Shown piece after piece: positions 11,066 to 53,968 of a stretch of 64,000 nt of DNA. The first letter of the stretch is position 1, and every line of letters begins with the position of its first letter. Location of the stretch: the NCBI RefSeq assembly GCF_006345805.1, contig NC_043000.1:89466001-89530000 (forward strand), given 5' to 3'. The notes under the pieces are model-generated. The model was given only the letters and a program-made list of their open reading frames with translations. It made no database searches and was not told the origin of the DNA. This stretch comes from Octopus sinensis. Its lineage: Eukaryota. Position numbers and translations under genes: made by a program.

Positions 11066-12360
11066 GATTTCTTTTATTGGCCACAAGGGCCCAAAACATC
11101 GAGGACAATATCGAAGGACGAGTTAAAGTACAACAAAAAAAAGAAAACGTGGTGTTAACATCAATCAAGGAGAGATACTACCACATTAAAGGATATAACA
11201 GAGGATGTATAATAGAAACTAGAGAAATGAATAATGAATAAATAAAATTAGAAACCCCTAAAGCGCGACAGTCCACTTAGGGTAATCCGGGGTAAACCCG
11301 ACACAAACTTCCCAGATTACTCTGCAATCTCCAAGATATGGGAAAGTGCCTTCTTCCAGTTTATTTCCTCCTGCTTAGAAAAACATATTCAGAGTAGGTC
11401 CATTCAGTCTCACCGCCGACCACCTTTTGATAAACACATTAGAAAGCAGCAGCAGCCTCTCGACCCTCACCTTCCTCTTCAAATGATATTTGAAGAAACT
11501 GATGTGGACTTGACCAGATAAGAAAGTGACTGTCTTCAAATCTTTCAGACGGGTCCACCACACAGCCTCTTTTGCCACAGCCACTAAGCAGAGAAAGTTC
11601 TGCCTTCCTACTCTACTAAGAGAAGGTAGTGCGTCGATCTTCACTATACAGTCGGCAGACAGCTGAATTCGTCTTACACGCTACAACAGCTGCTCTACGC
11701 AATCCCACAACTCTCTAAGGCACGGACACTGTATTATTGCATGCAGGACGGTTTCATCCCCTGCAAGCATCTCGGACAGGTTCAGCTGTTGGCACTTTCA
11801 TGTCTGAAGAGCTTGTCTCGAACGGCCAATACCCTTCTTTAGCAGTTGCCAATCCCAAAACTTTTGGAAATTGTCCATTATCTTCGGCCCGAAGGTTCCC
11901 TGGAAGTGACTACTCAAACTGTTCTTGTCGATGCCTAGATTTAATCCATCATTTATGCCCTCAAATAGCCCCCGCTGGAAATCTTGGTCTGTTTTCTCGC
12001 TAACGCTTTTGAGCAGCTGGCGCAATGCAGTGAGCGCCTGGCAACATTCTAGATGCCAAACACCTAACCTTGGCCTACGTTTGCCCCATGACTGCAGTTC
12101 TGTTAATGAGATGAGCTGCGGAAAGACGTTTTGTACGAAAGACGCCCACACCAGTTCACCCTTATTTTCGTCGTCGCGGTCCACATCTTTGCAGTGATTT
12201 AGATATTTCTGTAAATGCGACACCCTCAAAGCGTGGCGACGCATCATTAAAGATGGCATCCCAAGACCACCATTGTGTGGTCCCCCTGTTGCCAGCTTTT
12301 GGACCATTATCAGAGGGGTAGTCATGATGGGTATATTGGGCTTCGTGTCACTTTGATAGC
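11066..12360 (-). mobile_element. 5'-truncated Tx1/L1-clade LINE (degenerate ORF2 C-terminus plus 3' UTR), copy 1
   Basis: ORFs 11798-12448 and 11375-11644 (FGPKIMDNFQK, AKEAVWWTRLK, HLKRKVRVER) are homologous to 33550-34209. The 5' end abuts (ATA)n. Confidence 0.75.
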
Positions 12361-12363
12361 ATG

Positions 12364-12422
<59 letters not shown>

Positions 12423-12645
12423 TCCAGATTTTGGCACAAAGCCAGCAATATTTAGGGAAGGGGACTAGACATAGTTGGAATTCAACCGAACAAAAAAGCT
12501 TGATGTTGGTGTTCCATTGAAAAATTACTTCTTGTCTGAAAAATGTCTCCAAGAATGTGTGAAGAGAAAAGTGATGTGACATTGTTTCCGAAAAGCGGAG
12601 GGTGCGCTCAGTGTGCCCTCAACAGAGCATCTCCAGGAAATTCTA

Positions 12646-12715
12646 GCCGATATGTGAAGTGATTTTCATGGAATAGTGAAAGTTATTCAAACGCGTCTGT
12701 TCGGTTATCGAAATT
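12646..12715 (+). ncRNA. Decayed minimal hammerhead-like motif, probable Penelope-like relic
   Basis: GTGAAG, then a 9-bp stem TGATTTTCA/TGAAAGTTA, then TTCAAACGCGTC. The palindromic ACGCGT+C is kept; the core is mutated. Confidence 0.35.
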
Positions 12716-14019
12716 GACGTCAAGACGAGACGATAAGCAGAGACAGTACGACATTCTAAGTTTCATACAGCAAATACAAGAGTGACAATCTGTGTCATTT
12801 TAATGAGAATACCAACTGACATGATGTCACTTATATAGCAAAATATGAGCAGCTGGTCGTGGTGGCCAGTGCTGATGCAACGAAATATATTTTTTAATGA
12901 ACCACCGATGCCAAGCTTCTTTGTCAGTTTGAAGTTTGTCTATATTTGAAAATTATCTATGCCGAGCAGCATTACCAGTAAGAATGTTTCCATTTTCCCT
13001 CTCATTCTCGCTGAGCAAATGCTTTGCTGTTTTTTATTTTGTTGTTTTTATTTGGTTGGTTCTTTTGTTTTGTTTTCCTTTTTTATACCCATTGTTTTTG
13101 TGTTATTACCAAAAACATGTTGTTCTCACTAGTATTAATTTCTGCAGAGATATTCCTTCAAAAGAATATCCCTGTGTTCTCTGTTGCAAAAATACCCTTT
13201 ATCTCTATTTTTCTTTTACCTGATTGTTTTTTTTTTGTTTGTTTTTTTTTTGTGTAGTTGGGTTCACTTGTATTTTTCTTTGAGAGTTATTTTCTTCCAT
13301 CTCCTGTCGACCATTTCAGTTGAAATTTTTTATTTAAAAATGTATAAATATGGCTAACCTTAACAACAACAGACTCTAAGGTTCAGAAATAAAAGTGGGA
13401 GACTGAAGGTCTAATAACTGTGACTCCAAACGAGTGTAAATATTCTAATATGTATATTATCAAGAACTATTGTTCTTGATAATAAACATATTAAAATATG
13501 CTGAAATTCAGCATGTGTTAGGTTTGGTGGTGCCGTTAATAACATAGTAATTGGGTATACTAATCTGGTGTCAGAACATATCAAAAGAGAGATCAGGGTT
13601 TACTAGAAGGAAATTAAGCACCCAACTACTGGAAAAATTCATATATCCCTGAGACAGTAACACAAAAATTAAAATGATTGCAGAGAGACGTGAATGTATC
13701 GACAGGACAACCTTATAAAAGACAACAGATCTAGATTATGGGCACCTCAAATCATTAGGCCACATAATAACATCTGGGGAAATATGGCTGAAAATCTCTC
13801 CAAGTATAAAAACCAAAATCGAACTAGTAAGAATACAGAATACAGAGGGAGTGTGTGAGAGAGAGAGTGTGTGTGTCTGAGAAAGAGAGAGATTGCGTGT
13901 GTGTGTGTGTGTGTGTGTGTGCGTGTATTTATATTTCATTGAACAGGAAGTCACTGCTGCGAGGCTTGTTTTGTTTGTTGTTACATGTTTTATTGTTATC
14001 GTTTGGCGCGGTTTCTATT

Positions 14020-14120
14020 ACAGTACTTGCTGCTGTTGCTGTTGCTGATGCTGCAGTTGTTTACAGTCCTGCTTTGTTGTTGATTTTCTCTCCCCCCCCC
14101 TGCGCCTGTTGCTGGTGTTG

Positions 14121-14152
<32 letters not shown>

Positions 14153-14157
14153 GGTGG

Positions 14158-14188
<31 letters not shown>

Positions 14189-14460
14189 ACTGATGCTGGT
14201 GCTTGTGCTGGTAGTTGTATTGATGCTGGTGTTCGTCGTCGTCTTCATCGTGGTCCCACTGTTGTTTTTGATGTTGCTATTCTTGTTATTGAAGAGGATC
14301 ATGATCATGATGATGCTGATGATGATGGTAACGACGACGACGAGGATAATGATGAAGCCAACGACAACGTCTACAATGATGATGATGATACTGTGGTCGC
14401 TGCTGCCGCTACCGCTGTTGTTGTGGTGATTGTTACAATCGCGGTATTGTTAGTAGCGGT
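14020..14460. repeat. Compound trinucleotide microsatellite (GTT/GGT/GCT/GAT/GAC)
   Basis: Read directly from the sequence. It explains the spurious ORFs 14018-14308 and 14109-14429. Confidence 0.9.
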
Positions 14461-15223
14461 GGATGTCACCTTTGTAATTTTAATGAAGCTTGCTTTCCCT
14501 TGAACCAAAAGAAAAGTTTATTGGCTCGCTGCGCGGGCAAATAATGAAGTCTCTCCATAATCTCAATTTTATTCTTAATGTTGTGTCCATTATTTTTTGC
14601 TGTAGCTGCTTCAACTTCTACTTGTCTTTTTCAATCATTTTTTAGTAACATTTTACTAAAGACGCAAAACTGGGGACTCTTAATATGATCCTATTGCTTT
14701 TCTTCTTTCTTTTATTAGATACTATGGGTCTTTACGGTTCTATTGCTCTTTGAATCATCTACGGCAGCTCTTTCATCTCCTTTTGTGGAGAATATTATTA
14801 CGCTATCATGTTTTAATGAAATTACCGACGTTTAAAAAAAAAAAGGTTACGGTGATGACACAGTCCAGAAGCGAGAGCGTCGTAAAAAGAAAAAAGACAC
14901 ACGTCACTGAATTGCAAGTCAGTTTTTCCACGAGACTGTCGACTATAGCTAATGCGTTTTAATCAGTTTTTAGAGCAGAACAGCAAACAATTGACGATAC
15001 ATCCGTGATGACAAGGACAAATAGAGTTAACAGACAGGAAGTTCTGCCAGTATTGTTCAAAACCAAAGTAAAAAGACGTGGTATAAACATACTCCAGAAA
15101 ATGACAAGACAACCATCGTCTTGTATGTTTGTATGTATGTGCGTATGCATACATAGATAGATACGCACACACATACACATATATAAGTACACACACACAC
15201 ACGCACATATATATATATATATT

Positions 15224-15278
<55 letters not shown>

Positions 15279-15461
15279 CATACACACACATAAATATACA
15301 CATATAAACTCAAACAAACATTCATATAAAAATAAGAGCATATTTATTCTGTTATTCTTTTATTCTTCTATAGGTTTCAGTCCTAAGGCGGTGACCATGC
15401 GTATCTTTTCTATGCTGAAGCACTGCCTTTAAGGGTCTTAGTCGAACATGGGTTTTAGTCG

Positions 15462-15499
<38 letters not shown>

Positions 15500-15938
15500 A
15501 CTGTTCTGTTCTTAATTGGGTCAACACAAAATTTACTCTATCTAATGGGAAATAGATATAATTTATATACACATTGTTTAAATATGAGGTGCTAATGGTT
15601 TCATACTATGGAAACGCAATAATTCGGCATATAAGACATGATATATAAATCTACCGAATTATGCGTTTCCACAACATGAAAAATATTATAGTATACTGTA
15701 TATATATATATCAAAGTGTCAATAAGACAATCGGAAATTGTTATACACCGCTGATTATAATATGCTTCCTCACATTGTTGATGCTATTGTTGTTGTTGAG
15801 ATAATTTCTCTTTCTTTCCTGATTAGAAGATAACATTATATTACACCGTTTATTCCTTTGGAATAAAACCAAAGTTGCCTTCGAAACATATGTTGAAAGT
15901 AAAAGAATTTGAATAACATCTGCATTCAACTCCATTTA

Positions 15939-16322
15939 TCTCTCTATATATAACGGCAGTTTGTCTGTGCGTGTTTCTGTGTGTCTGTTTGCTTGTACCC
16001 TCACCCTGACCACGGCTTTCAACCGATTCTGATGAAACTTGACACACACATAGCCCAATGTCATAATTCAAAACTAACGCAGCGAAAATTTTGAAAAGTT
16101 CCCCCAGTTCTGAAAAAAATCGATAAATTCGACATGGGGTCGAGAATCAGAAACACAAACCACAAACTGTCTAAGGGAACGCAACTCCACCTTTTTTAAC
16201 TCTCACAAAAAATTTACCATCATTTTTTTCCATTTTTTTGCTATTTTTTGGCTATAACTCTCTAAAAATGCTTTATAGTTATTTCCCTTACAAACCTGAG
16301 CAACGCCGGGCGATACTGCTAG
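15939..16322 (+). mobile_element. Non-autonomous Helitron
   Basis: A|TC 5' end, internal GTCT/GTGT microsatellite, subterminal GC hairpin (CCTGAGCAACGCCGGG), and CTAG|T 3' end, consistent with an AT target. Confidence 0.8.
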
Positions 16323-16483
16323 TTTACTTATACTATACAAATTTCTGCACATTAATCCGGAGTTTCTACCTTTGAATAGGTCGCTACATCCTTGTTACTT
16401 GCATGAATTTTGCTACCCTGGTAACTGTTTATTGAATTTTCCGTGTTAACTGTAAACAAAGGATAATTCGTTCATCCATTTCC

Positions 16484-16541
<58 letters not shown>

Positions 16542-17194
16542 TATATATATACACACACACACATAAATATGTGTGTATGAATATATATGTGTATGTGCGT
16601 GTATGTACGCGTGTGTGTGCGTATGTTTGTGTGTGTAAAAACTGCACAGAAATGTGGTTTTTTGTTCGGTTTCACTGCATGTCATCTTGGGCAAATATAG
16701 CCTCGGACTTATGAATGATTTGTAAATATAATTATAAGACGGAATTCTCCTTTCTCTCTCTCTCTCTCTCTCTCACCCACTCACACGCACACACACATAC
16801 ACACATATACATACATGCATACATACATGCATACATGCATACATACATACATACATATACGCACACATGCATTTCCTACCTACATAAATTTTTGTACATG
16901 CACGCATGTACGTATATATATGCATGTATATATGAATATATGGATATGCATTGCTATAGTCATGTGACCCAGCATAGCTGCAGTCCGTTAAGTAAATATG
17001 TAAAAGACTAAAGGAATATCAGACATGGAAATGCATCATTTTGAGAAAATATATATAAGTTACAAAAGGCAGTCGTTAACACATGTACGGAATTGTGACC
17101 AACAAAATTTGATATATATATATATATTGGAATATAAGGATACAAATAAATCTATATGATAATTAGCGTGTTCGTTCGCCCGTTATAAATTAGT

Positions 17195-17578
17195 TAGTTA
17201 GAGAGGTGGAGGTGGAGTGAGTGAGAGGGAGAGAGAGAGGAAAAAGTGTGAGTAAAGAAGGAAGACGTGAGAAAGCAGTAGTGAACGATATATAACAGGG
17301 CCAAAATGTGACACGTGGTTTGTTACAAGCAGAGGCGAAGAGCGAGAGGAAAAGACGGTAATAGGAAAGAGCAAAGGAGTACGAAAGGAGGAGGAGGAGG
17401 AGGAGGAGGAGGATAAGGAGGAATGAGAGAGGAGTGGGAGAGGAGGGGTGAGAGAGAAAGAAGGAGAGAGGAGGAGTAAGAGAGTAAGAGGGAGAGAGGG
17501 GGAGAAGGAGTGAGAGAGGAGGAGGAGTGAGAGAGGAGGAGGAGTGAGAGAGGAGAAGGGGTAAGAGAGGAAGAGTGA
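17195..17578. repeat. Polypurine (GAG/GAGA/AAG) low-complexity tract
   Basis: Mostly G/A on the + strand, almost exclusively so in the 3' half. Confidence 0.8.
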
Positions 17579-17815
17579 CCATGTTGCTCGATTTTTCGAG
17601 TTAGACCCTGCCTACCGTGTTCTCTTCAGTGAGGATCCGGATGGGATGATGGCCCATTTTAGTCGACCACATGCCACATGGTAACGGCAAATGACGAGGT
17701 ATTTCGCGGAGATGAGGAAAGACTGGAGTCCGCTCGACGTGTTGCCCGGAAGGACTCGGGAATATACCGACAAATGCTGCAGCGGCATATGCCCAAACAC
17801 CTGACCTGGTCTGGC
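17578..17815 (+). mobile_element. 3' fragment of an RTE/RTEX-like LINE with a CCTGA-type tail
   Basis: Translation HVARFFELDPAYRVLFSEDPDG...RPHATW. Ends ACCTGACCTGGTCT. Confidence 0.5.
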
Positions 17816-17879
17816 ATATGGTTATATTGCTTCCGAAATATATGTAATAACATGGCAAAATATAAAACATATAATGATA

Positions 17880-18065
17880 AGGCACCGAGCTCGCAGACTC
17901 GTCAGCTCACCAGGCAATATGCTTAGCGACATTTCATCGTCTTTGCCTTCTGAGCTCTCAAATTCCGCTGAAGTCGACTTTCGGGGTTCATAAAATAAGG
18001 ACCAGTTAAGCATTGAGGACGATGTAATTCTCCTCCGAAATTGCTGGTCTTGTGCCAAAATTTTA
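17880..18065 (+). mobile_element. Group-1 tRNA-SINE (tail c)
   Basis: TGCTTAGCGACATTTC, TCAAATTCCGCTGAAGTCGACTTT, and tail TTGCTGGTCTTGTGCCAAAA. Confidence 0.7.
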
Positions 18066-18129
18066 AACCAATATAATAGAGAAAACAATAAAAACTATAA
18101 ATGTAGTAATCATATTGTTAGTGAAAATA

Positions 18130-19020: not shown

Positions 19021-19724
19021 CCAGTCACGCTTTACTTTGTATAGAAAGAAAGCAAAAATGAGACGCAGAGAGAGAGATAACTCAAGGGGTGTAGAATGAG
19101 TGAAGAGAAAGAACCATAGGCATAGAAGAGGAAGAGCTGGAGATGAAGTAAATGAAAGGGTGAAATTGTACAAGTGCGAAACATGTTTTCATTTTATTTT
19201 AAGTTTTTTTTTTTTTTTACTTTGAAAATTAGTATTCATTTCTTCATTTTGAATAAGCACCAAGAAACTTAATAGAAGTTAAATTATAGTTATTGCTACA
19301 TATGCCATATTTCTTGATATTACCAACGGTAGCGAAAGTACATTTCTGAAGTTACTCGTCATTTTGGGATCGATCCAGTACCGAACAGCTATTCCGGATT
19401 ATTTTTCCTGTTTTTTTTTACTTAATTTTTAAGAGCGGTCGGTTTCATTTTTAGTATTCTCGTTTGTGAGAGCAGTCGAGTTTATTTCAAATATTCTCAT
19501 TTTTAAAATCACCTCTGACTAATCGTTGAGAGGACGTTTGTGTTGCCTTGGCGGAGGTTATCCCTCTCTGAGAGCTCTTGTTTAATATTATGCTAAGTTA
19601 ATAAACTTTGTGCAGGAGTAATTAGTATTCATTCATAATTTTGCATAAGTACCCAGAAAATTGATAAAATTTAAATTATCATTATTTTATGCATTCCATA
19701 AATCTTCGTATAAATATTAATTTC

Positions 19725-20125
19725 AAAATGTTGGCACAAGGCCAGTAATTTTGAGGAAAGGAGATGAGTCGATTACATCGACCCCGGTACATAACTGGTA
19801 CTTATTTTATTGACTCCAAAACGATGAACGTTCCCCGTTCATCGACAGAATTTGAACCCAGAGCGTAAACCCGGAAGAAATGTCGCTAAGCAATCTGCCA
19901 GCTCACAGCCTTAATTCCTAATATCAATAATGGTTCCAAAATGTGACAGAAGGACAGCAATTTCGGGGGAGGGTGAGCCGATTACATCGACACCACCTCC
20001 CCAGTAATCAACTGCCATTTATTTCAATGACCCCCGAAAAGGAAAGGTTGGCCCCGGGAAATTTGAACTCAGAACGAAAAGATGCATTTTGCCCGAGTGC
20101 TAACCATTCTGCCAGTTCAACGATT
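19725..20125 (-). mobile_element. Two group-1 tRNA-SINEs (tail c)
   Basis: Two copies of the GATTACATCGAC...AATTTGAA.(C/T)CAGA core. TTGGCACAAGGCCAG tail at 19732. Confidence 0.8.
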
Positions 20126-23159: not shown

Positions 23160-23295
23160 TATTCCACCTTCATCATCTTTGCCTTTCATCCTTTCGGGAT
23201 CGATAAATTAAGTACCAGTAGAGTACAGGGATCGATGTAATCGACTTAGCCCCTCAGCGAAATTGCTGGTCTTGTCCCAAAAAGTGAAACCAATA
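23160..23295 (+). mobile_element. Partial group-1 SINE (tail c)
   Basis: TTTGCCTTTCATCCTTTCGGGATCGATAAATTAAGTACCAG...TTGCTGGTCTTGTCCC. Confidence 0.75.
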
Positions 23296-31685: not shown

Positions 31686-32490
31686 ATGTATGTATGTAGT
31701 ATATGTATGTAGCATGTATGTATGTACGTATGTATGTATGTATGTATGTATGTATGTATGTATGTATGTATGTATGTATGTATGTATGTTGCCATCTTAA
31801 ATTACGGTCAACTTATTTACACCAACTACACGTTTTGAAACCGATATTTCGTTAGACAATCGTTCTCAGCACGATAAAGAACTGCGCGGATTTTGAAAAA
31901 ACACTCTTCCAACGAGTTTGTAATTTTGGAGAAGAAATTCAAAAAATAATATTCTCCACATTTGGAATTTAAATTGTAAACTACATAATTATCTTATAGA
32001 ACAAAATTCTCTTTCTAACAAGCAAATTTATCGGAAATTTACCTGCATACTAATTATATCGTTAAATCTATTTTTTTAGAATGTATAATAGCGCTTCACA
32101 GATTGTTTTGCTTTAAATTTTGTTCTATTTAAGTTACAAAAATTATTTTATTTTGTTCAGATTAAAATAGTTTTCTTCCACTATTTGGTTTGAATTTAAA
32201 AGTATTTCTTTGACTTTAAATTTATCTTATTTCATACTGTTGGTCAATTGTTAATAATTCAAGAATATATTATTATAGCTTTCTTACATAACCTCACATA
32301 TTTTCTTACAACATATTATTTAGCCGAAAAGTGATTTCTTAACTATTTATGTCTATCAAATTAGCGACGAAAATACAGAGTTATTTTATTTAAAATACAG
32401 AAGTATTTATTTTATCAGTTCCATAGAATCATCGATATTAAATAAGTGGATAAACTACGTTTCAGTATTTGAGAAGATAGATAGATAGAT

Positions 32491-32830
32491 AAGTTTCTTT
32501 ATTGGCCACACAGGGCTGCACACAGATGGGACAAATTACAAGGTAAGAGATGGGTAGAGAAAAGGTATGGGCGAGAGGATACCAAAGTGAGTAGTAGTTT
32601 TAGTTGTAAAATTCAAAGTGGATAGAAGAATACATGGATGTCAAATTTCTATAAATAGACGTATGTATGTTAGTGTGAAGGTAGGAATCAGAGAGAAAGA
32701 AAGCCGGTATAATGACATACGTACGCGCGCACACACGTACATATACAAGTGCGCATATACATCATTTATACACACATACATACATATATATATATATATA
32801 TGGATATACACTCACATACATATATATACA

Positions 32831-32869
<39 letters not shown>

Positions 32870-34209
32870 TATATATAATACATATATATATACATGCATA
32901 CTCACGCGCATCCGTAAATGTGTTCATACACGCATATGCGTGCGCATACATATGCTCATACGTACACATACATACGCGCTGGCGCACACGCGCTTACGCA
33001 CAGTCACATGCACGAGCGCATACAGCTACATACGTATGCATATATACACATACACACACTCACTCATATATATTTGTATGTAGATTTTGCAAGTACATAT
33101 ACACACACGTACATATATATATATATACATATGTAAATATATATATATATACATATACCCACATACATTTTCTTTTGTGGGATGAAAAAAAAAACAAAAA
33201 AAACAAAAAAAAGAAACAAAAGAAAGTGGCGTAGGTTTTCGATCAAAAGGGATCGTAAAAGGGGAAAAAGAAAAAAAAGAAAAGAAAAGAAAAAAAAGAA
33301 AAAGAAAAAAAGGAAAAGAAAAATAAAAAAGGAAGAAAAAGGAGAAAAAAAGGGGAGAGAAAAAAAACGATCAATAGGGATCGTGTATCACAGTGTCATG
33401 ATGTACGGTGTAAAGGGGAAAGCAGATAAGGTTTATCCGTGGGAAGAAAAGCCTACGAAAAAGACCACGGTAACCTCGGTCAATATTGTTATATGTTACC
33501 ACATTTGTTTGCAAGTGGGTAACCCTCTATTTTCAATTTCTGGGTTCATAGGATTATGCTCAAGGTGGCTTCGTCATTCATACGTGCCATCCTTGCTACA
33601 TTCACCCATCTTTTTTTAAAACATTCGCTAGACAAAACATGCCTTTCTACTCTCACTTTCCTTTTCAAGTGTTACTTGAAGAAGTTGATGAAAGATTGAC
33701 CAGAGAGGAAAGTGTTTGTCTCCAATCCTTTCAGACGCGTCCACCAGATACATTCCTTCGCCATAGCCACAAGGATGATAAAAATAGCTCTTCCTTCCCG
33801 TTTGAAGGAAGGAGGCGTGACAATATTGACGATAGACTCAGCTGATAAACCGACTCGTCCCACACGTGACAGCAGTTGTTCGACATAAGCCCACAGGTCG
33901 GAAATTGTTGGACACTGCACGAGTGCGTGCAGAACAGTTTCGTCGCTCTGACCGCATCTCGGGCAGGTCGGCCCCGTGTTTCTCGAGCCGTGTCTGTAGA
34001 GCTTATCCCGAACGGGTAGCGCTTCTCGGTAGCACTGCCAGGCCAGGGATCTCTGGAAGTTGTCCATGGGCCCTGGCCCGAAAGTCGTCCCGAACAGGCG
34101 GATCAGGTATTCCTCGTCGACGTCCAGGTTCGCTCTGAGCTCGTCGTCGTACCTCCCCTCCACTAATCCCCTATAGAATGCTTTGGTTGTGATGGAGTCA
34201 CTCAAGGTC
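32491..34209 (-). mobile_element. 5'-truncated Tx1/L1-clade LINE (zf-RVT C-terminus plus 3' UTR), copy 2, inserted in (AGAT)n
   Basis: ORF 33672-34289 contains LAWQCYREALPVRDKL...CPRCGQSDETVLHALVQC (RT-associated zinc finger) and a nonsense codon at about 33672; the frame continues to about 33550. (AGAT)n at 32475-32490 and 34210-34283. Confidence 0.85.
32544..33168 (+). repeat. About 625-bp direct copy of 36825-37438 embedded in the Tx1 3' UTR
   Basis: Near-identical from TAAGAGATGGGTAGAG to ACCCACATACAT; differences are mainly microsatellite length. Confidence 0.9.
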
Positions 34210-34284
<75 letters not shown>

Positions 34285-34863
34285 CTCATTAAAATTCCTT
34301 CGTATCAGCGTACCAAATGTTTATATTTCATTTGGAACAATAAATTTCCTAAATTTATCTTTCTCGACGTTTCTAGGTTACATGAGCTCCATCTTCAGAA
34401 GGAGGTATGATTTCGGCTTCTTTTCTACCCTTACATTTGTGTTTATTTAAATATTAGGTGTTCACTAAATGATAAAAGGCGAATGAGGCAGAACATCCTG
34501 CAAATGGGAGTGTTACAGCCTGGAAACATTGAAAAGATGAATTTGAGAAATTTATTGTTTAATATATATCTGCCCAAATTTGAAACCTATATATGTCTAT
34601 CAGTTTCAGTGTGTGCATAATTTAAAGGAAAAGAAGTTAAGATAAATAAATCAAAGCGGCAAAAATCAGATTCAATGTAAAAAGAAAAGACAATTAAACG
34701 TTAATCAAAGTATCATGCATTCTGAATTCTTTAGTTGCAATGTAGTAGTTGAGATCAATCCAAATAAGGAGAAGAAATATTCTGAAGGATCAAACTGTTG
34801 TGTGGACGCACCCAGACGATTAAATAGGCTAGCCCAATACGTAGATATAGTGGGAGAAGCCTA

Positions 34864-35090
34864 TTTCTTTACTACCCACAAGGGGCTAAACACAGAGAGG
34901 ACAAACAAGGACAGACACACGGATTAAGCCGATTATATCGACCCCAGTGCGTAACTGGTATTTAATCGACCCCGAAAGGATGAAAGGCCAAGTCGACCTC
35001 GACGGAATTTGAACTCAGAACGTAGCGGCAGACAAAATACTGCTAAGCATTTCGCCCGGCGTGCTAACGTTTCTGCCAGCTCGCCGCCAT
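34864..35090 (-). mobile_element. Full-length young group-1 SINE (tail a) with a 36-bp target-site duplication
   Basis: Complete head (reverse complement GGCGGCGAGCTGGCAGAAACGTTAGC, A-box) and B-box GAGTTCAAATTCC. Direct repeats at 34828-34863 and 35091-35126. Confidence 0.9.
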
Positions 35091-35682
35091 GCTAGCCCAA
35101 TACGTAGATATAGAGAGAGAAGCCTAGACGTCAATGAGAGAGCAGAGTTGAGTAGTAGAGGCACCAAACGAGCGACATAACACAAACATACTTCGAAACT
35201 AATAAAAGCAGTTAGCTGGTCTGGTAGCAAAACAATAGTTGTGGCAACTGTTTCTGTATCAATAAGCGTCACCAGCATTCCACTAGGCCATAAATGCATC
35301 CTACATTTTTTTCTTTGTATATGACTAAGTATCTGGTCTGATGCATTCATAAGACAATGCAGTATTGATGAGTTGAACACGTACGCACAGATATTTCCTT
35401 GTCTGCGGACAATCAGATTAATTTTTCTTAATGTCTAAGTCAATATCGGAATATTCTTTCTTCTTCTCAATCACTTTTCATTTGGAATTAATCGTTCTTG
35501 TCTCAGTGCAGTAATAAAGCAAGAATTTATCTTGTACTTGAGTTTTATTCATCTTTTTTATATAGATGTGTATGTATTTGTGTGTGTGTGTTTGAGTATG
35601 TGTGTGTACCTGTGTATGAAAGTTTGTGCGTAAAGTATGTATGTGTACTTATATACACACAGGCGCACACATATTCATATAC

Positions 35683-36219: not shown

Positions 36220-37111
36220 GATGTAAGTTGGTTAAATAGAGGTAAATATTTGAGTTCGAAATAAGGATTTATTATGGAAAAGGAGGAGGTAGGGAATATA
36301 GAGGGAAATAAGTGAATGAAAGACGAAATAAAATATAAAATATATGAAGATATTATAGTTTCAGTTCCATTATTCTAGGAAAGTGGTGTATAGAAATGGC
36401 GCAAAAGCTTCCTGTACATGGTATGTAAGTTCCAATAGTAGTTCATGCTTAGTCATTTCAAAGTATGTAGCCGTGGATTCTGTGTTGTTCATTCGAAAGT
36501 GTCTTGTAGTGTGAAAGAAAATTTCAGAATGTATTGGTAGCATTTGTGGATAGATGAGAGGAAAGAAGTGCGTATTATTAGAATGAAAAGATATGTCAAA
36601 ATGAAAGCAGGAAACGAAAATGAGAGGAAGAAAGAAAGAAGAGAAAATGAAAAAAGAAAAAAGGGGAAATGGGCGAAAGAAGTGAGAAAAGGAGTGTTAG
36701 TTGGTGGTGAAGATAATGTGAGGAGATGATGCGAGAGCAGTGGGGAGGAATAGGAAGAGATGAGAATGTAAGGAGTAAATAAGTGTGAGATATGTGAGTA
36801 GGGGTTGATGTAATAGAGCTGCATTAAGAGATGGGTAGAGAAAAGGTATGGGCGAGGGGATACCAAAGTGAGTAGTAGTTTTAGTTGTAAAATTCAAAGT
36901 GGATAGAAGAATACATGGATGTCAAATTTCTATAAATAGACGTATGTATGTTAGTGTGAAGGTAGGAATCAGAGAGAAAGAAAGCCGGTATAATGACATA
37001 CGTACGCGCGCACACACGTACATATACAAGTGCGCATATACATCATTTATACACACATACATACATATATATATATATATATGGATATACACTCACATAC
37101 ATATATATACA

Positions 37112-37148
<37 letters not shown>

Positions 37149-37869
37149 CATATATATATACATGCATACTCACGCGCATCCGTAAATGTGTTCATACACG
37201 CATATGCGTGCGCATACATATGCTCATACGTACACACATACATACGCGCTGGCGCACACGCGCTTACGCACAGTCACATGCACGAGCGCATACAGCTACA
37301 TACGTATGCATATATACACATACACACACTCACTCATATATATTTGTATGTAGATTTTGCAAGTACATATACACACACATACATATATATATATATACAT
37401 ATGTAAATATATATATATATACATATACCCACATACATATACATACATACACAAATATACATGCACGCACCTTTACACAAACGTGTATCCGCTGCATGTC
37501 CATATATGTAGTATTAAATGATTGAGATCCTTAATGTAAGATAGGGGAGTTCAAAAATTAAAGATTAAAAATTAAAATGAAGATAAAGGAAAGTTAAGTA
37601 GGATTATTGGGGATGACGTAAGGGAGGTTGTGGATATTTGCTGTGTGGTTATTGAGGTTGCATTTAGACATGTGGTAAAATTGGAAGGTATGAGAAAAGC
37701 GTTAGTTGCATGTACTTAAAGCCCCATTATATTTATTTAGTAGCGTCGAGAAATCGCGTTTTAATATGTGGAATGTCTCTTTTAGGCATAACTTACAGGC
37801 TAAGCATTGATCTTGGTATGGAAGCCCTGAATCTATTATGGACCATGAAAAATTGTAGGGAATATTTCT

Positions 37870-43929: not shown

Positions 43930-44140
43930 TCCCAGAGTTTGTTGTTTTGTAACGGGAGTCAGTTTAATCGACTTACCCCACTTCCCTCTGAGTTCAATCC
44001 CGCTGAGGTTAGCTTTACCTTTCATCCCTACGGGGTCGATAAAATAAAGTACCAGTAATGTACTGGGCCGCTTTAATCCACTTATCCTTCCCCACAAATT
44101 GTTGGCCTTGTGCCTAAATGAGAAATTATTATCTAAAATT
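43930..44140 (+). mobile_element. Group-1 SINE (tail c), partly rearranged
   Basis: CTGAGTTCAATCCCGCTGAGG..CTTTCATCCCTACGGGGTCGATAAAATAAAGTACCAG..TTGGCCTTGTGCC. Confidence 0.75.
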
Positions 44141-44259: not shown

Positions 44260-44294
<35 letters not shown>

Positions 44295-45574: not shown

Positions 45575-45820
45575 TTTTATTGCTTATTTCTTATTTCTTT
45601 ATTGCCCACAAGGAGCTAAACATAGAGGGGACAAACAATGACAGACAAAGGGATTAAGTCGATTACATCGACCCCAGTGCATAACTGGTACTTAGATTAT
45701 CGACCCCCAAAGGATGAAAGGTAAAGTCGACCTCGGCGGAATTTGAACTCAGAACGTAGCGGCAGACGAAATACGGCTACGCATTTCGCCCGGCGTGCTA
45801 ACGTTTCTTCCAGCTCGCAG
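45575..45820 (-). mobile_element. Young group-1 SINE (tail a) ending in AAGAAAT repeats
   Basis: Colinear with 34864-35090. Confidence 0.88.
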
Positions 45821-47329: not shown

Positions 47330-47480
47330 AAACACTTAGCGTCATTTTGTCTTCTTTAGGTTTTGGGTTCAAATAACGCCGAGGTCAACTTTGCCATTCA
47401 TCCTTTAAGGGTCGATAAGATAAGTAAACTCGACAATCCCCCTTCCCATAAAAAAATTCAGGTTTTTTGCCTTTAGTAGG

Positions 47481-47490
<10 letters not shown>
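47330..47490 (+). mobile_element. Group-1 SINE (tail b) followed by (ATT)n
   Basis: GGGTTCAAATAACGCCGAGGTCAACTTTGCC..TTTAGTAGGAAGTATT. Confidence 0.7.
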
Positions 47491-47517
<27 letters not shown>

Positions 47518-47599
47518 ATTGCTGTTGCTACTGTTGTTATGGCTTATTATTTGATATTATTTGGGGGTTGACTAAGATTCGATCTTATTCCTGGCTGGT

Positions 47600-47835
47600 T
47601 TTATGTGGGTAGCGGGTTATTACTTCTACCCTTAGATGTCCACTAGCTTTCAATAGTCTTTCAAGTGCTTAGAACCTTCCTGATAATCTTTCCTGTTCCT
47701 TAGACGCAAACTTTTTGTAGAAGCTCTACCGCACCTTATATTTCAATCTCCTTCAACCATTTGTCTGTTTCTTTGCTTACAGTTCCCAGTGTACCAATTA
47801 TTATTAGTGCAACCTTTACACTTTTCATATTCCAA
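47600..47835 (-). mobile_element. R4-type 3' micro-fragment (family D)
   Basis: IWNMKSVKVALIIIGTLGTVSKETDKWLKEIEI, between TTA tracts. Confidence 0.65.
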
Positions 47836-47912
47836 ATATTATTATTAGTAGTATTATTATTATTATTATTATTATTATCACCATCATCATCATCATCATC
47901 ATTATTATAATT

Positions 47913-49020
47913 ATGTGTTTGACTTTTGCTTTGTATTTGTACAAGTTGGCTCCAAATCTCACCCAGAGACCTCAAGAGACAAGTTAGAAGTTCATGTTGG
48001 TGTTATGCCTACAGTGCCATATATTTGGTTTTGTACATAGTATTGTTCTAGAGAATGTTAAGGAAACATAAGAAAATTATGAGTTTGTTTTAAAACTTGA
48101 GAATACATACGCAGTATTTTACGTAGGATATGGGCAGTTCCCATGAGCACTATCTTTTGAATTTCTGCCATTTTGGGGTTTCCTGGTATCTGACCTAGGT
48201 AGCAATCAGCTCCTTTTCCTATCATACCTGGGGCACCTATGACAACAGGTATTGTTTTAGACTTCAGGTTTCAGATTTTGCCAATTTCTATTTCAAGATC
48301 TTTATATTTGCTCTTTTTTTTGGTAGGTCTTGACAGATACATTCATATCGATTGGGACTGTCATATCAATGAGGAGGCATGTTCTTTGTCTAAAGTCTTT
48401 CAATATGATGTCTGGCCTATTTGCATCTATCTTTCTGTCAGTTTGAATGGTGAAATTCCAGAGGAGTGAGATGTGATCATTTTCAAGCACTGAAGCTGTT
48501 TTGTGTTCCTTCTAGTTTTTATCAGTTTTATCAAGTCCAGTTTTTTGCAAATTACCCAGTGAATATATTGTGCAGTTCTATCATGCTTGCTGAGATACTC
48601 TGTAGGCGCAAGAAGGGAGACAACATAAAGACAACATGATCAATGGTTTCATTTTGTTGTTGGGCAGCTGCCGTTCTTTAATATGTTGGCATGGTAGTGT
48701 CTTGTAGGTAGGCATTGATGTTGGGCTGATATGATAAACCCTTCTGCTTCTGATTTTAAGCCAGAAGCCATTAACCATTGATAGGTAAGTGCTTTGTCAA
48801 CATCGGCATTATTAGCGCTCTTTGGGTATTTGCCATTGAGAGTTTTTTTTTTGTACCATTTCTCAGTAAGAATATCTATGGCAGCAGTTTTAGCACGGAT
48901 TTTCATACGCTTAGCCTTTTCTGTGCTTGTTTCTAGTACGTCTAATTTTGGAATTTGTTGTATTTGGAATTCACTTATATATTCCTTTGCCTCTTTTGTT
49001 ATTGGGCTGGTCTACAATTA
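47913..49020 (-). mobile_element. Degenerate 5'-truncated R4 family B copy
   Basis: YQWLMASGLKSEAEGFII.AQ, and LLWNFTIQTDRKIDANRPDIILKD..CLLIDMTVP. The 3' UTR matches 3643-3830. Confidence 0.88.
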
Positions 49021-49339
49021 TTTCCTCCGTAGTTTCTTCTTTAGCTGCAGCTTCGTTCTTTTATCCCTTCTTGTTTAATTTGGTCAATCTCTAATTCAGT
49101 TAGTAATTTCTTCTTCACAATGTTTCTTCTGACTTTGGCAAGTTTGTGACTGTCTATGTAGGGTCTTACTTCAAGGTGTTTCTATCTCCAGTTTAAGTAG
49201 GTTTTTACAGTATTAGATTTATTTGTGGGGAAATATATGGCATGACAGAAGGCCGTAACAACTTCTTCATTATCTACCCTAGACCATTTTTCATTCTTTT
49301 TCTTTTGGTTATTGATGAGAGTATGGATGGCTATCTGTT

Positions 49340-49580
49340 GGTATATTCCCGTTGTAGGGTACTTGCAGTTCCAGTGTTATCAAATACTCGGCAAACGTTC
49401 TCCTTTCACTACAATGTTCTATACTAATTAGTCCTCTTCCACCATTCTTTCAATTCATATACAGTCTGTTTACGTTTGCTTTAGGGTGTAGCGTCCCATA
49501 CAGCGTCATGAATAATCTCGTCCTTCTATTCAGTGTTGATATTTCCTCCTTAGTCCGTTTGAGGATGGATACACTAAGAA
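49340..49580 (-). mobile_element. R4-type thumb-region fragment
   Basis: RRTRLFMTLYGTLHPKANVNRLY followed by GGRGL. Confidence 0.7.
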
Positions 49581-49624
49581 GGAGGAGGGAGAAGGAGAAG
49601 AGTAGAAAGAGGTAGAGGATGAGA

Positions 49625-49830
49625 CTTCGACAAAGCAGACTCGCCAGTACGCCGGACAAAATACTTTGTGACGTTCCGTCCGTCTTTATGTTCTGAGTTC
49701 AAATACTGCCGAGCTCCAACTTGCCTTTCACCCTTTCAGTAAATACTAGTCGAGTAACGGTGTCGATCTAATCGACTTACCCACTTCCCTAATATTTCGG
49801 GCTTTCTGCCTATAGTAGAAAGGATTATTG
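49625..49830 (+). mobile_element. Group-1 SINE (tail b)
   Basis: GTTCTGAGTTCAAATACTGCCGAG..CCTATAGTAGAAAGGATTATT. Confidence 0.75.
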
Positions 49831-51374
49831 TATTTGTTGTTGCTGTTGTAGCTGCTTTCGCCGTCATTGTAATTATTATTTAATTATTGTGACCCTCAGA
49901 ATAGTAAGAATGGTTATGATGTTAGTCGCCTTAGTGGTTTTGATTTTTGAAGTAGCCGTGTCAGTTATTGGCTGTTAGCTGATGTGTGTGTTTGTGAGTT
50001 TATAGAAATGGTAGTGTGTGTACAGAAGGGGTGTGCGTAAATGGAAATTTTCAACAAGATCTATTAATGATCTTATCAGCACTATTCCTCATATCGTGTA
50101 TTATTATCTATGACGTTCAAACCGTCTGTTTTGTACTCAGTTCGACAAGCTAGTGGACATCTCAGTTCGACAAAAATCTGCAAAAACACTTTAAACATAT
50201 GAACATACAAACATACAGGGTGGACGTCAAAGTTCGTCCAAATATGACCTTTTCTTAGACATCGATGGCGCTTAAAGTTCATTTACAATGAAGGACGCAG
50301 CTGCAAGAGCGACAGAAAAAACACACTACCATGTGCCGTCGTGAACGAGAGAACTACCGACATGGTAGATTTTCCTTAGTGCATACATATGTAATAACCG
50401 ACAACCGCAACAACAATAACCTCTTTTGATAGTTGTTCGGAGAAGATCCTGTGCGTAAAATTAAATATGAAAGAAACGTGCACAGATCTGTATCTATGTT
50501 TCGTATAAAGCAGCTTTCTTCTTCTCGGCTGCCTGACATTGACTGAAATGAGGAGAGACTGAATGACCCTATCGTTTGGCATGAGAGAATCCTTCTCCTA
50601 GACAAATGTTAAGTGTTTTTACAATACACTCATTCACCACCTCGTGTATTTCCATAATGTGTTACAAGATAAACGATGATCTTTCACTGGATTCATCTGT
50701 CCTTTTGACTGGTCTTGTTTTTGTGTCCAAATGGGTTTCTTCCAACCCCCTTTTAACCAGGCTAGCTTAGTGAGTGTTGCGGGTTGAGTTACCGACGATG
50801 TTGAACCCAGTTACACGTTACCAGTAATATTTAGAGCAACCTAACTATAAACATATCAATGTACAACCTGTACATACGTCACTTTCAACAATATGTAGTT
50901 CAATTCTTCTACTAATAGAGTTGTCTTCTCTTTGAATTATAGGGCTCGGCACATGTCGTTAATTTTATTATCTTGCTGACTTAGCAGGACGCTTTTAAAA
51001 CTAAGCAGGCTCTTAAAACTACAGGTTGGCGTATCGAAGAATCTTCTAAAGTGTCAGTTTACTCATTTGTATCCAAGTGGTTTGGATAGGATTGAGTCTA
51101 CTTGGTTGCGCCCATGTATACATACATGCACACATAAATAGAGGCATACATACATACATACATACATACATACATACATACATACATACATACATACATA
51201 CATACATACATACACACACACATACATACACGCATGCATGCATACATGTCATAACTGGAACTGAAAAATCTGTAAAATTTGCCTTAGATCTAGGTTAGAA
51301 ACCGGCTCTTTCTCTATTGGCAAGAAAGCTTGAAATAAAACTGTATAATGACATACATATCATCAAAGCAGTTT

Positions 51375-51510
51375 ATCATGGACGAATAGCCGGATTACTA
51401 CCTCCCACTTTGAAGGGTATGCGTTTGCAATCCAGAAACAGGAAATATCAACCAAGTACCTGATGCGCAAAAAGGATAGAGATGCAGGAAAAGCCGTAAA
51501 ATATGACAAC
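51375..51510 (+). mobile_element. Fragment of another RLE-type non-LTR family (E)
   Basis: ITTSHFEGYAFAIQKQEISTKYL, the motif upstream of the zinc knuckle. Homologous to about 54000. Confidence 0.55.
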
Positions 51511-51582
51511 TAATGCAAACTTTGTGGAGTTCACACTGAATGTATCACGCACATCATAAGCTCATCAAGACATATACATATA

Positions 51583-52480
51583 CATATTAGGCGTACATTG
51601 AGTATATATTTAACAGAAAACCATAATAATATTATAACATTTATTGACATAATAAATTATTTAACCACATGAGCGCCGAGAAAGTAACGATCCGATTGTG
51701 GGACGTCTAAGACTGTGATAGCTAGGGACGTAAGGAATATTGGCCGCAAGTTACGTGGGAAACCTGGACAAACAAACAAAGCCATTTTCACCGCCTCCGA
51801 ACTTCCTCCTGAAAACCACCAGAAATCGCATCCTCGGGACCTCAGCTTCCATGCGGAAACCCCTAAAACTGACTCCTCACGGGAGTTTGAAGTTTCAATC
51901 AGCCCAAAATTACATGACGTAAGACATGGGTTGTGTTTTGTTCACTGACGAAACCAGAACAACCCTTGACGAAATTGACGGTTGGGCAAACGGTTGGGTC
52001 TATTTTGGAGATACATGTCACCAACGTTTACGACGTCAACAACAGGGTGGATGAGTCATGTTGTGAGCTAGTATAATTGGAGACAGATTTGTTCGCCCAG
52101 TCAGGGTGCCTGTAGAGGTTGAAGTGACCGCAACCGCCTACTGCAATCTCCTGAAGAAGGTCTTGGATCCTTGGCTAGATGATATACTGCTGTCACTTCC
52201 AAGGAATCTCGAATTAATGCATCATAACCCTCCCTCCCACTCTGCTAGGACCACCTATTTACGTCGAAAGATGTCTTATGGGTGACCATCAAAGCTGCAG
52301 CAGAAGCAGTTCAAACTGCAACTATTAAGAAATTGAAAGATTCCATGACTATTAGGGTTTTTGAAGTTATCCGTCGAAATGGCGCTCATGTGATTAAATA
52401 ATTCAATGTCAATACATATGTCAATAAATGTTATAATATGTTTTTTCTGTTAAATATATACTCAATGTGTGCTTAATATG
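51583..52480 (+). mobile_element. Deleted Tc1-like transposon with about 100-bp TIRs
   Basis: CATATTAGGCGTACATTGAGTATATATTTAACAGAAAA... is inverted at 52380-52480, with TA on both sides. FTDETRTTLD..DGWANGW and MHHNPPSHSART remnants. Confidence 0.85.
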
Positions 52481-52721
52481 TATCGTTAACTTCCGTTTTC
52501 TGAAAAAAAATGGCTATTTTCATTCAAAGGTTATTAGCGTGGTTCACCCAAAAACTGAAGAATCTGAAATAAGAAAAGTGACGTTGCGTGGAATAATGAA
52601 AACATAACAATAGTGTTACCATAGTGTGCAAACCAGTTGGGGAAATTTTATCAAAATCGATTCACAGAAAACCTAAAAATCCAAGATTTCACTCCTAAAC
52701 TATTAGCGTGGTTCTGGGTGT

Positions 52722-52753
<32 letters not shown>

Positions 52754-52853
52754 CCATACATACATACATGCATACATACATACATACATACTACATACAT
52801 ACATACATACATACACACACACCCATACATACATGCATGTATGCATACACACA

Positions 52854-52887
<34 letters not shown>

Positions 52888-53259
52888 CATACATACATAC
52901 ATAGGTAATGTTCATGTTCAATGACTTAACATGGAAAAAAGTGTTTCTCAAATACCAAAACTTTGCAACGATGGTCTGTCTGCCTCTCATGTTACACAAA
53001 ACGCTAGCTACAAATAGCTAGATATTGATGAAATTATATCGTATGAAGGTGCTGTGAACAAAGATGAAATAACAAAAAAAAAAGAAATATTATAACCAAA
53101 TAAAAAAGATTTGGCTGTCAGGGTTTTCTCCTTTAAAGGCTATACACCAAATTGTATTTGCAGTACCGGTACTGTATTAACATTTAGCATATCAACTGGT
53201 CATATGAGGAAACGTGCAAGATACTAACATTAACTGCAATCTTCCAAGGACGTTGAAAT

Positions 53260-53968
53260 TTTGGGTTCAAATTCTGACATTAAGCTTGTTATTTCGGGAG
53301 CGGGTAGGTCGAGTCCATCGACTACGGTGGAATTTGAACTGAGGACAAAAAGACGGGTGAAATACCTAGTTCTTTTCTACCCACAAGGAGCTAAACACAG
53401 AGAGGACAAACAAAGACAGACAAACGGATTAAGTCGATTATATCGACCTCAGTGCGTAACTGGTACTGATTTAATCGACACCGAAATGATGAAAGGCAAA
53501 GTCGACCTCGGCGGAATTTGAACGCAGAACGTAGCGGCAGACAAAATACCTATTTTTTAATTACCCACAAGGGGCTAAACACAGAAGGGACAAACAAGGA
53601 TGGACAAACGGATTAAGTCGATTATATTGACCCCAGTGCGTAACTGGTACTTATTTAATCGACCCCGAAATGATGAAAGGCAAAGTTGACCTCGGCGGAA
53701 TTTGAACTCAGAACGTAGCGGCAGATAAAATACCTATTTCTTTATTACCCACAAGGGCTAAACACAGAAGGGACAAACAAAGATAGACAATCGGATTAAG
53801 TCGATTATATCGACCCCAGTGCGTAATTGGTACCAATTTAATCAACCCCGAAAGGATGAAAGGCAAAGTCGACCTCGGCGGAATTTGAACTCAGAACGTA
53901 GCGACAGACGAAATACCGCTAAGCATTTCGCCGGGAGTGCTAACGATTCTAAAAGCTTGTCGCCCTAG
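53260..53968 (-). mobile_element. Head-to-tail array of three group-1 SINE units (tail a) within an older SINE
   Basis: Units of 184 bp with matching junctions AAATACC|TA(T/G)TT at 53366, 53550 and 53734. Confidence 0.9.

Follow-up and report, generated by a model that had tools for sequence, protein, structure and literature searches.

LINE and SINE copies with a common hairpin at their 3' ends

The window analyzed in this study is a stretch of 64,000 nt from Octopus sinensis (NCBI RefSeq assembly GCF_006345805.1, contig NC_043000.1, positions 89,466,001 to 89,530,000 of the forward strand), which is A+T-rich (31–41% G+C) and dense with retroelements and microsatellites. Two remnants of long interspersed elements (LINEs) and 19 copies of one short interspersed element (SINE) body (nhmmer, with one full copy as query) were found to carry a small hairpin, decayed in many of the SINE copies, at their 3' ends. 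This hairpin, referred to as H1, consists of a G+C stem of 3–4 bp with an invariant C-G closing pair and the loop CUUGU. A preliminary description of the window had reported the motif at ten sites, and at each of them (10/10) the sequence was read as described, on the minus strand save for 18045 and 44102.

A covariance model of the hairpin region gave 19 matches in the window at E ≤ 0.5, all of them (19/19) located at SINE or LINE 3' ends; over the 126 kb searched in total, the same model detected 51 sites, the 19 of the window included. For an alignment of 30 tails, from which the covariance model had been built, RNAalifold predicted a 4-bp helix around CUUGU and nothing else, and a separate set of 20 a-type tails (see below) likewise yielded only this helix. 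An extended lower stem (UCU.UGUU with AAUA.AGA), visible in single folds of SINE a and of the Argonauta SINE, was discarded, as it received no RNAalifold support in the a-type tails.

The LINE features of the window are as follows.

11066-12365, minus strand: LINE copy 1, 5'-truncated (tblastn to P0008/P0009 over 11378-12280; open reading frames, ORFs)
About 11375-12280, minus strand: LINE copy 1, ORF2 C-terminal remnant (tblastn, ORFs)
11066-11374, minus strand: LINE copy 1, 3' untranslated region (3'UTR) of 309 nt (collinear with the relatives L008, L001, and L006)
11079-11091, minus strand: LINE copy 1, H1, GGCC-CUUGU-GGCC, then AAUAAAA (sequence read)
11068-11071, minus strand: LINE copy 1, GAAA (sequence read)
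33172-34289, minus strand: LINE copy 2, ORF2 C-terminus and upstream 3'UTR (Pfam, tblastn, comparison with the relative L002)
32544-33168, no strand: TA/TG-rich block of 625 bp (blastn; 97% duplicate of 36825-37438 in the same orientation)
32494-32543, minus strand: LINE copy 2, terminal 50 nt of the 3'UTR (nhmmer tail profile, E 8e-13)
32505-32516, minus strand: LINE copy 2, H1, GCC-CUGUGU-GGC, then CAATAAA (covariance-model match 32488-32529)
32494-32497, minus strand: LINE copy 2, GAAA, reading GAAAC (sequence read)

Both LINE remnants represent ORF2 C-termini with the zf-RVT region, and their protein relatives were found in Argonauta hians, Acanthosepion pharaonis, and octopus-like contigs. 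Read on the minus strand, copy 1 ends with ...GGGCC-CTTGT-GGCC-AATAAAA-GAAATC, followed by a short degenerate (ATT)n, and its hairpin was matched by the covariance model at 11063-11104 with 35.7 bits. In copy 2, the zf-RVT domain spans 33549-34289 (Pfam PF13966, E 2.3e-8), with 66% identity to P0008 over 33549-34190 (tblastn), whereas its 3'UTR lies in two parts.

The upstream part (33172-33548) features a T-rich expansion and blocks in common with L002, and the terminal 50 nt lie about 1 kb from the ORF2 remnant, the 625-bp block included. The first bases of this tail can be aligned to the final 22 nt of L002, a similarity that is weak when taken alone (p about 0.08). In L002, which is 81% identical to copy 2, the two 3'UTR parts are only a few bases apart, and this near-adjacency suggests that the 625-bp block is an insertion into the 3'UTR of copy 2 and that the tail probably belongs to copy 2 itself; the idea of an unrelated 50-nt fragment was therefore dropped. 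No target-site duplication was seen at the ends of the block. The proposal that copy 2 ends in the hairpin stands with regard to the sequence, but its tail is split from the LINE by what appears to be an inserted block.

The hairpin as part of the LINE 3' ends

LINE relatives were fetched together with their flanking DNA. In addition to those of the window, copies that terminate in H1, at a set distance beyond the ORF2 stop and with no intervening SINE body, came from Argonauta hians, cuttlefish, an octopus-derived metagenome contig, and two ENA assemblies. The near-full-length Argonauta copy L001 encodes an ORF1 of 639 aa with one CCHC knuckle (CX2CX4HX4C) and an ORF2 with the domains PF03372 (APE), PF00078 (RT), and PF13966 (zf-RVT). 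Its 3'UTR of 215 nt ends with ...TTGCC-CTTGT-GGCT-AATAAAA-GAAAT, followed by ATT repeats. The end of L008, a JGI contig, is identical to that of window copy 1 (...GGGCC-CTTGT-GGCC-AATAAAA-GAAATC(ATT)n). In window copy 1, L008, and L001, the 3'UTR that follows the ORF2 stop codon and terminates in H1 measures 215–310 nt. For a second Argonauta subfamily (L003), one copy shows the variant hairpin AGCC-AGGT-GGCT, and an adjoining copy, consisting of the 3'UTR only, ends with ...CGGCC-CTTGT-GGCT-AATAAA-GAAATCTATT. Since this neighbor has the canonical CUUGU, the AGGU loop was not regarded as a feature of the lineage, and the L003 copy bearing it may be a decayed one.

In total, six LINE copies have 3'UTRs that are collinear from the stop codon onwards; four of them reach far enough, and all four run into the hairpin. 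No SINE head was found inside these six 3'UTRs, and an origin of the LINE ends from SINE insertions was therefore rejected, in agreement with the preliminary description, in which the LINE ends had been taken as authentic. Two relatives did not qualify as additional LINE tails: the contig of L002 ends a few bases short of where the hairpin is expected, and the left hairpin arm of L006 is mutated.

More distant relatives, with 35–43% protein identity, are the cuttlefish (Acanthosepion) element L009 and the ENA elements L005 and L010 to L014. These end in GGC-CUUGU-GCC about 680 nt past the stop codon, and by eye the rest of the 3'UTR could not be aligned between the two LINE groups. As no copy of the SINE head was present in the fetched decapodiform-type loci, the hairpin is best regarded as a property of the LINE group that is older than the octopus SINEs. 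The elements L010, L011/L012, and L013/L014 (ERZ26052130, ERZ21867824) are arranged head-to-tail in arrays that repeat about every 7.5, 6.8, and 6.6 kb, and the corresponding LINE protein clusters comprise hundreds of members (385 and 732). H1 occupies the same place in every unit of these arrays.

A protein-pattern scan and the DNA pattern CCCTTGTGGNNAATARAGAAAT retrieved no further LINE or tail copies from the metagenome and prokaryote-genome collections. The protein P0011, labelled as originating from a Herbaspirillum metagenome-assembled genome, shares 60% identity with the ORF2 of the Argonauta LINE across 72% of the query and most likely represents cephalopod DNA mis-binned into a bacterial genome.

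The CCHC knuckle of ORF1 together with APE, RT, and a C-terminal zf-RVT in ORF2 places the LINEs ending in H1 in the L1/Tx1 group, at which level the assignment is left undivided between Tx1 and L1. The best PDB match of the cephalopod reverse transcriptase (RT) was human L1 ORF2p (E 5e-22, versus 1e-13 for R2), a weak comparison, as the PDB holds no CR1, RTE, I, or Jockey RT. Mammalian L1 acts together with Alu/B1 in the relaxed manner, using the poly(A) tail, and no 3' sequence is common to L1 and these SINEs. The cephalopod LINE resembles mammalian L1 in its related RT and differs from it in an ORF1 without the Transposase_22 domain. Cephalopod repeat surveys list L1-Tx1 LINEs as well as tRNA-Core/Deu SINEs (PMC13282606, PMC8967140).

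One SINE body with three tails

In a multiple alignment, the SINE copies of the window share a common body up to GTCGATGTAATCGACT, after which three tails diverge, represented by five young copies (a), about seven copies (b), and about eight copies (c). The following copies were distinguished.

34862-35086, minus strand: SINE with tail a, copy a2, full length (nhmmer; covariance-model match 34858-34899)
45594-45818, minus strand: SINE with tail a, copy a1 (nhmmer; covariance-model match 45588-45629, 43 bits)
53370-53961, minus strand: three tandem SINE-a units (nhmmer; covariance-model matches 53731-53771, 53547-53588, and 53363-53404)
10860-11054, minus strand: SINE with tail b, AGGC-CUUGU-GCCU, UUAAUA, GAAAGG, (AUU)n (nhmmer; covariance-model match 10860-10901)
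4102-4296, plus strand: tail-b SINE whose loop has mutated to CATGT, with a long (ATT)n run ahead of it (nhmmer, covariance model)
62723-62936, plus strand: tail-b SINE whose stem has decayed, with (ATT)18 ahead of it (nhmmer, covariance model)
49633-49827, plus strand: SINE with tail b, decayed loop (nhmmer, covariance model)
19716-19900, minus strand: SINE with tail c, UGGC-CUUGU-GCCA, ACAUUUU, GAAA (nhmmer, covariance model)
5992-6634, minus strand: head-to-tail chain of three SINEs (nhmmer, covariance model)
12416-12457, minus strand: variant of tail c, UGGC-UUUGU-GCCA; the long (AUU)n run behind it adjoins the 5' end of LINE copy 1 (covariance model)
17886-18073, plus strand: SINE with tail c, UGGU-CUUGU-GCCA, one G-U pair (nhmmer, covariance model)
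43979-44131, plus strand: 5'-truncated SINE with a tail between b and c (nhmmer; covariance model, 42.2 bits)
19928-20119, minus strand: SINE with decayed tail c (nhmmer, covariance model)
23172-23295, plus strand: 5'-truncated SINE with decayed tail c (nhmmer, covariance model)

Tail a aligns over about 55 nt with the 3' ends of window LINE copy 1, L008, and L001 (...TGTCC..TTGT.TCGTCCCCTCT.TGTTT..GCCCTTGTGG..AATAAA.GAAAT), and this stretch was evidently copied from the 3' end of that lineage. A corresponding relationship was observed in Argonauta, where 25 kb of flanking DNA contain more than 25 copies of a SINE tail equal to the L003-type LINE tail. Homology between a SINE 3' tail and a LINE of the same genome or lineage was accordingly found for tail a and for the Argonauta SINE with L003.

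For tails b and c, which are homologous to each other, the H1 region has its match in two further LINE lineages, both seen in decapodiform-type assemblies only. Tail b matches L011 through CCCCC.AAA..T.CAGGCCTTGTGCCT, with CCCCCAAAACTCCAGGCCTTGTGCCTA of L011/L012 being equivalent to CCCCCTAAAATTTCAGGCCTTGTGCCTT of the tail, while tail c matches L013 through GGCCTTGTGCCAAATTTG, with AGGCCTTGTGCCAAATTTG of L013/L014 being equivalent to TGGCCTTGTGCCAAAATTTG. The search for LINEs corresponding to tails b and c was thus successful among the decapod-type relatives, but no octopod LINE with such a tail was detected by tblastn of the window or by a protein search with P0014.

The preliminary description had further assumed one tRNA-derived SINE head bearing the three tails. 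One body and three tails were indeed observed, but a tRNA head was not confirmed: ARAGORN found no tRNA gene and Rfam had no match in the window at the gathering score, nor did Rfam match copy a2 at E ≤ 10. Only a B-box-like GTTCAAATTCC is visible in the head, instead of the A and B boxes of tRNA-derived SINEs, and the head may have an old, diverged tRNA origin.

Copy a2 ends at ...GGGTAGTAAAGAAAT, and its target-site duplication fixes the end of the tail-a element at ...AAAGAAAT. This duplication is unusually long, at about 35 bp (34825-34861 / 35087-35125; AGGCTTCTC..CTATATCTACGTATTGGGCTAGC); for copy a1, a degenerate one of about 20 bp is possible. Copy a1 contains the terminal AAGAAAT unit about three times over. 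In the tandem arrangement, the unit at 53739-53961 is of full length, those at 53557-53733 and 53371-53550 begin at about SINE position 46, and each unit terminates in H1 and AAUAAAGAAAU. The whole represents a SINE-derived repeat with a period of about 183 bp, in which units 2 and 3 directly follow the ...AAAGAAAT of the preceding unit. The stem of copy a3 (53737-) is shortened by a 1-nt deletion.

Decay of the loop or the stem has affected many of the copies that carry tail b or c. The 5' end of the SINE at 10860-11054 adjoins the tail of LINE copy 1, the chain at 5992-6634 is composed of units c (6472-6634), b (6247-6410), and c (6030-6172) linked by ATT-like tails, and the intermediate tail at 43979-44131 reads UGGC-CUUGU-GCCU, AAAUGA, GAAAUU, AUUAU.

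Covariation of the stem

In the alignment of 30 tails, 89.2% of the stem cells were paired, compared to 66.9% after shuffling, and none of 500 shuffles reached the observed proportion; the covariation score was 0.534 versus 0.166 in shuffles, and controls with slid partners paired in 17–49% of the cells. The proportion of paired stem cells was again 89.2% for 49 distinct tails aligned by the covariance model. To curb the inflation caused by copy number, 14 lineage representatives were aligned, namely eight LINE tails, three hand-written SINE consensus sequences, and three Argonauta variants. Here, 91% of the stem cells were paired versus 68% after shuffling (0/500), with covariation scores of 0.505 and 0.151, respectively, and slid controls at 20–46%.

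CCTTGTG (CCUUGUG in the RNA) is invariant in all 14 representatives. From the outer to the inner position, the stem pairs are GC/AU/UA/GU, GC/CG/AU, CG/GC, and CG, and three of the four pairs consequently vary on both arms. The earlier statement that the stem changes while pairing and the CUUGU loop are retained is therefore supported by the comparison with shuffled and slid alignments. A conserved 3'-terminal stem-loop with compensatory changes was thus recovered across several lineages, with pairing above both kinds of controls, but both the length of the helix and the number of independent events are small.

Sequences following the hairpin and insertion sites

GAAA lies 6–7 A/U-rich bases beyond H1 in the octopod lineages, which comprise the a-type LINEs, the Argonauta SINE, and the SINEs of the window with any of the three tails. 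In L008, L001, LINE copy 1 (in degenerate form), and SINE tails b and c, two bases and then (ATT)n come after GAAA, so that LINE and SINE share a terminal repeat. The decapod-type LINEs possess a lineage-specific second hairpin, H2, between H1 and a terminal AAUAAA(U)AA, and for L009, L011, and L013 the fold of minimum energy contains both H1 and H2. The constant spacing to GAAA proposed earlier hence applies to the octopod lineages, but not to the decapod-type LINEs read, which have no GAAA at a fixed distance. In the LINE lineages read, AAUAAA is located no more than about 12 nt from the end, with the exception of one Argonauta copy (AAGAAA), and may serve Pol II (RNA polymerase II) 3'-end formation; it is absent from SINE tails b and c.

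The Argonauta SINE tail (L001 1189-1204, L003 120-161) forms a perfect second hairpin, AAUAGA-GAAA-UCUAUU, with GAAA as a GNRA-type loop, and one Argonauta SINE subfamily displays the compensatory variant AUGGA-GAAA-UCCAU. Octopus SINE a stops at GAAAU and cannot form this second hairpin. Three SINE tails at L001 996-1361 constitute a tandem repeat of about 157 bp.

Long perfect (ATT)n tracts were present at the 5' end of 3 out of 14 SINE copies with tails b and c, and degenerate ATT tracts at that of about five more, with a background of 0.6%. SINE b/c copies and LINE copy 1 are joined head-to-tail via (ATT)n, at 4042-4101, 6636-6705, and 62658-62717, and also at 10796-10865, 12330-12415, and 47439-47520. 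This pattern suggests that the b/c SINEs and LINE copy 1 may have inserted either at (ATT)n or within tails that earlier copies had left. The SINE a copies reside in ordinary, non-repeat target sites. Kibi and Koshi are microsatellite-targeting Tx1 elements, and the (ATT)n chaining of the cephalopod copies recalls such elements, with the cephalopod clade set at the L1/Tx1 level only.

Another LINE family is represented by two inverted copies (1-3288, minus strand, and 6731-9640, plus strand) with RVT_1 and a weak zf-RVT match. Its 3' end, ...GCACGCTAT(A)12T(AAT)n, which is complete, contains no CUUGU hairpin, and its 3' repeat (AAT)n is complementary to the (ATT)n of the H1 family.

Discussion

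Considered together, these results are best explained, and in our opinion probably so, by a LINE/SINE tail partnership of the stringent type that operates via H1 within the L1/Tx1 group. By analogy with stringent LINEs, the RT would recognize H1 and use it in starting reverse transcription. The LINE ORF2 protein would pick its template RNA by binding the terminal H1, target-primed reverse transcription would begin adjacent to the hairpin, and the (AUU)n end would probably aid priming on targets rich in (AAT)n/(ATT)n. A Pol III (RNA polymerase III) transcript of the SINE with a borrowed H1 could then be mobilized in trans, and the octopus SINE would have swapped its 3' tail at least three times for LINE ends of the H1 group. 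This scheme is based on the conservation pattern and on work on L2-clade and plant L1 elements (PMC4176376, PMC3472496, PMC3747384). Conservation, linkage to LINEs, homology of the SINE and LINE tails, and covariation of the stem are observed in the sequences, and binding by the protein and a part in initiating reverse transcription are inferred from the analogy.

Several observations weigh against this partnership. The helix is confined to 3–4 bp, single-sequence folding energies were mostly no better than those of shuffled sequences (z from +0.2 to −2.0), and the independent compensatory events number only about 5–7, since many of the sequences are copies of one subfamily. Pairing fails at the outermost position in 4 of the 14 lineages, the stem of L005 holds an internal G.A mismatch, one Argonauta LINE copy carries AGGU as its loop, GAAA at a fixed spacing is lacking in the decapod-type LINEs, and the partnerships of tails b and c rest on relatives from other assemblies, given that no octopod LINE of these types was found.

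The invariant CCUUGUG could equally serve as a primary-sequence signal, and the main competing explanation, which we consider unlikely, builds on this: CCUUGUG would act linearly, as a single-stranded RNA site for ORF1p or a host factor, as a 3'-end processing or termination element near AAUAAA, or as a motif at the DNA level, with the flanking complementarity being secondary or incidental. The invariance of the motif in 14 lineages next to a short, thermodynamically weak stem with an often unpaired outer pair fits such a role, as does the proximity of AAUAAA to the end of all LINE lineages read, bar the one Argonauta copy. It accounts poorly, however, for three stem pairs that flip on both sides and stay complementary far above the shuffled and slid controls, or for a helix that RNAalifold finds unaided; moreover, tails b and c keep the hairpin without AAUAAA, which their presumed Pol III transcripts would not need.

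Clearly less probable still is a shared descent without function, in which all tails derive from a single ancestral LINE end, have had no time to diverge, and contain palindromes by chance. The elements are indeed all members of a single LINE group, and the count includes many copies from the same subfamilies, which inflates the shuffle statistics. Nevertheless, CCUUGUG and its pairing persist between LINE lineages with 35–43% protein identity and otherwise unalignable 3'UTRs, the stem changes are overwhelmingly pair-preserving, and old, decayed SINE copies have lost the motif, so that neutral decay must be fast enough to erase H1. Finally, what look like LINE 3' ends might be SINEs, or fragments of their tails, that landed next to LINE remnants, as SINEs are extremely dense in the window, the tail of copy 1 adjoins a SINE head, and that of copy 2 is about 1 kb away from its ORF. 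We regard this as very improbable, because four LINE copies from three sources proceed from the stop codon through a collinear 3'UTR into the hairpin with no SINE head between, and because the decapod-type loci lack the SINE head, yet show H1 at the same place in each array unit.

The proposed partnership via H1 has counterparts in well-studied systems. Stringent LINEs need their own 3' stem-loop, as described in the general LINE/SINE literature (PMC3747384, PMC4176376). Like the stringent pairs of the L2, CR1, and RTE clades, among them eel UnaL2/UnaSINE1 and zebrafish ZfL2, the cephalopod elements combine a SINE tail derived from a partner LINE with a short terminal hairpin, a conserved loop, a variable but paired stem, and 3' repeats ((AUU)n here, (UGUAA)n in UnaL2). 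They differ from these pairs in the APE, RT, and zf-RVT of an L1/Tx1-group LINE, in the CUUGU loop, and in the shorter stem, and they are known here from their sequences.

Within the L1 clade, LINEs of maize and sorghum have been described with a 3' hairpin, compensatory stem changes, and SINEs with the same tail (Ohshima 2012, PMC3472496), and L1-group elements are thus not all dependent on poly(A) (PMC3472496). The cephalopod system is similar in that an L1-group LINE with a conserved 3' hairpin, compensatory changes, and conserved loop bases shares its tail with SINEs. Unlike the plant elements, with their poly(A) end, UCU loop, and flanking CGAG, the cephalopod ones have (AUU)n or AAUAAA at their ends, and the tails of three LINE lineages occur on a single SINE body. 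The crocodilian SINEU, which ends in poly(A), was tied to Tx1-Mar by target preference and 5' heads (Kojima 2015, PMC4494074), and, unlike the present case, its Tx1 link does not rest on a common 3' hairpin (PMC4494074). What the two systems have in common is that an L1/Tx1-group LINE is proposed as the driver of a SINE.

Tail sharing and 3' hairpins with compensatory changes are therefore well known, but they are rare within the L1 group, whose members are known chiefly for relaxed template choice by poly(A), and rarely reported for animals of this group; the few L1-tailed SINEs recorded were described from plants and a green alga (PMC3472496). No description of H1 was found in the open literature searched, Repbase and Dfam entries aside. 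SINEs reportedly make up the largest repeat class in octopus genomes. The open literature searched names no LINE as their partner, and the repeat surveys, as far as consulted, contain no partner analysis (PMC13282606, PMC8967140). Our results point to a LINE family of the L1/Tx1 group that would drive, at a minimum, the youngest SINE subfamily of the window. A more far-reaching version, which we advance tentatively and for which the balance falls slightly on the side of doubt, is that an animal L1/Tx1 RT working in the stringent mode has retained C-CUUGU-G since before the octopod/decapodiform split, and that this system, with its preferential integration at (ATT)n and with one SINE body repeatedly swapping tails among at least three LINE lineages, drove the large SINE expansion in octopus.

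In practical terms, H1 offers a small and defined RNA element (13–14 nt) for binding, structural, and retrotransposition work, and the motif together with the covariance model provides a simple finder and classifier of such tails for cephalopod repeat annotation. If the proposed partnership is true, the occurrence of H1 in an animal L1/Tx1 lineage would support the view that stringent recognition is ancestral in the L1 group, and cephalopods would supply an animal system in which the switch between stringent and relaxed template choice within this group could be tested.

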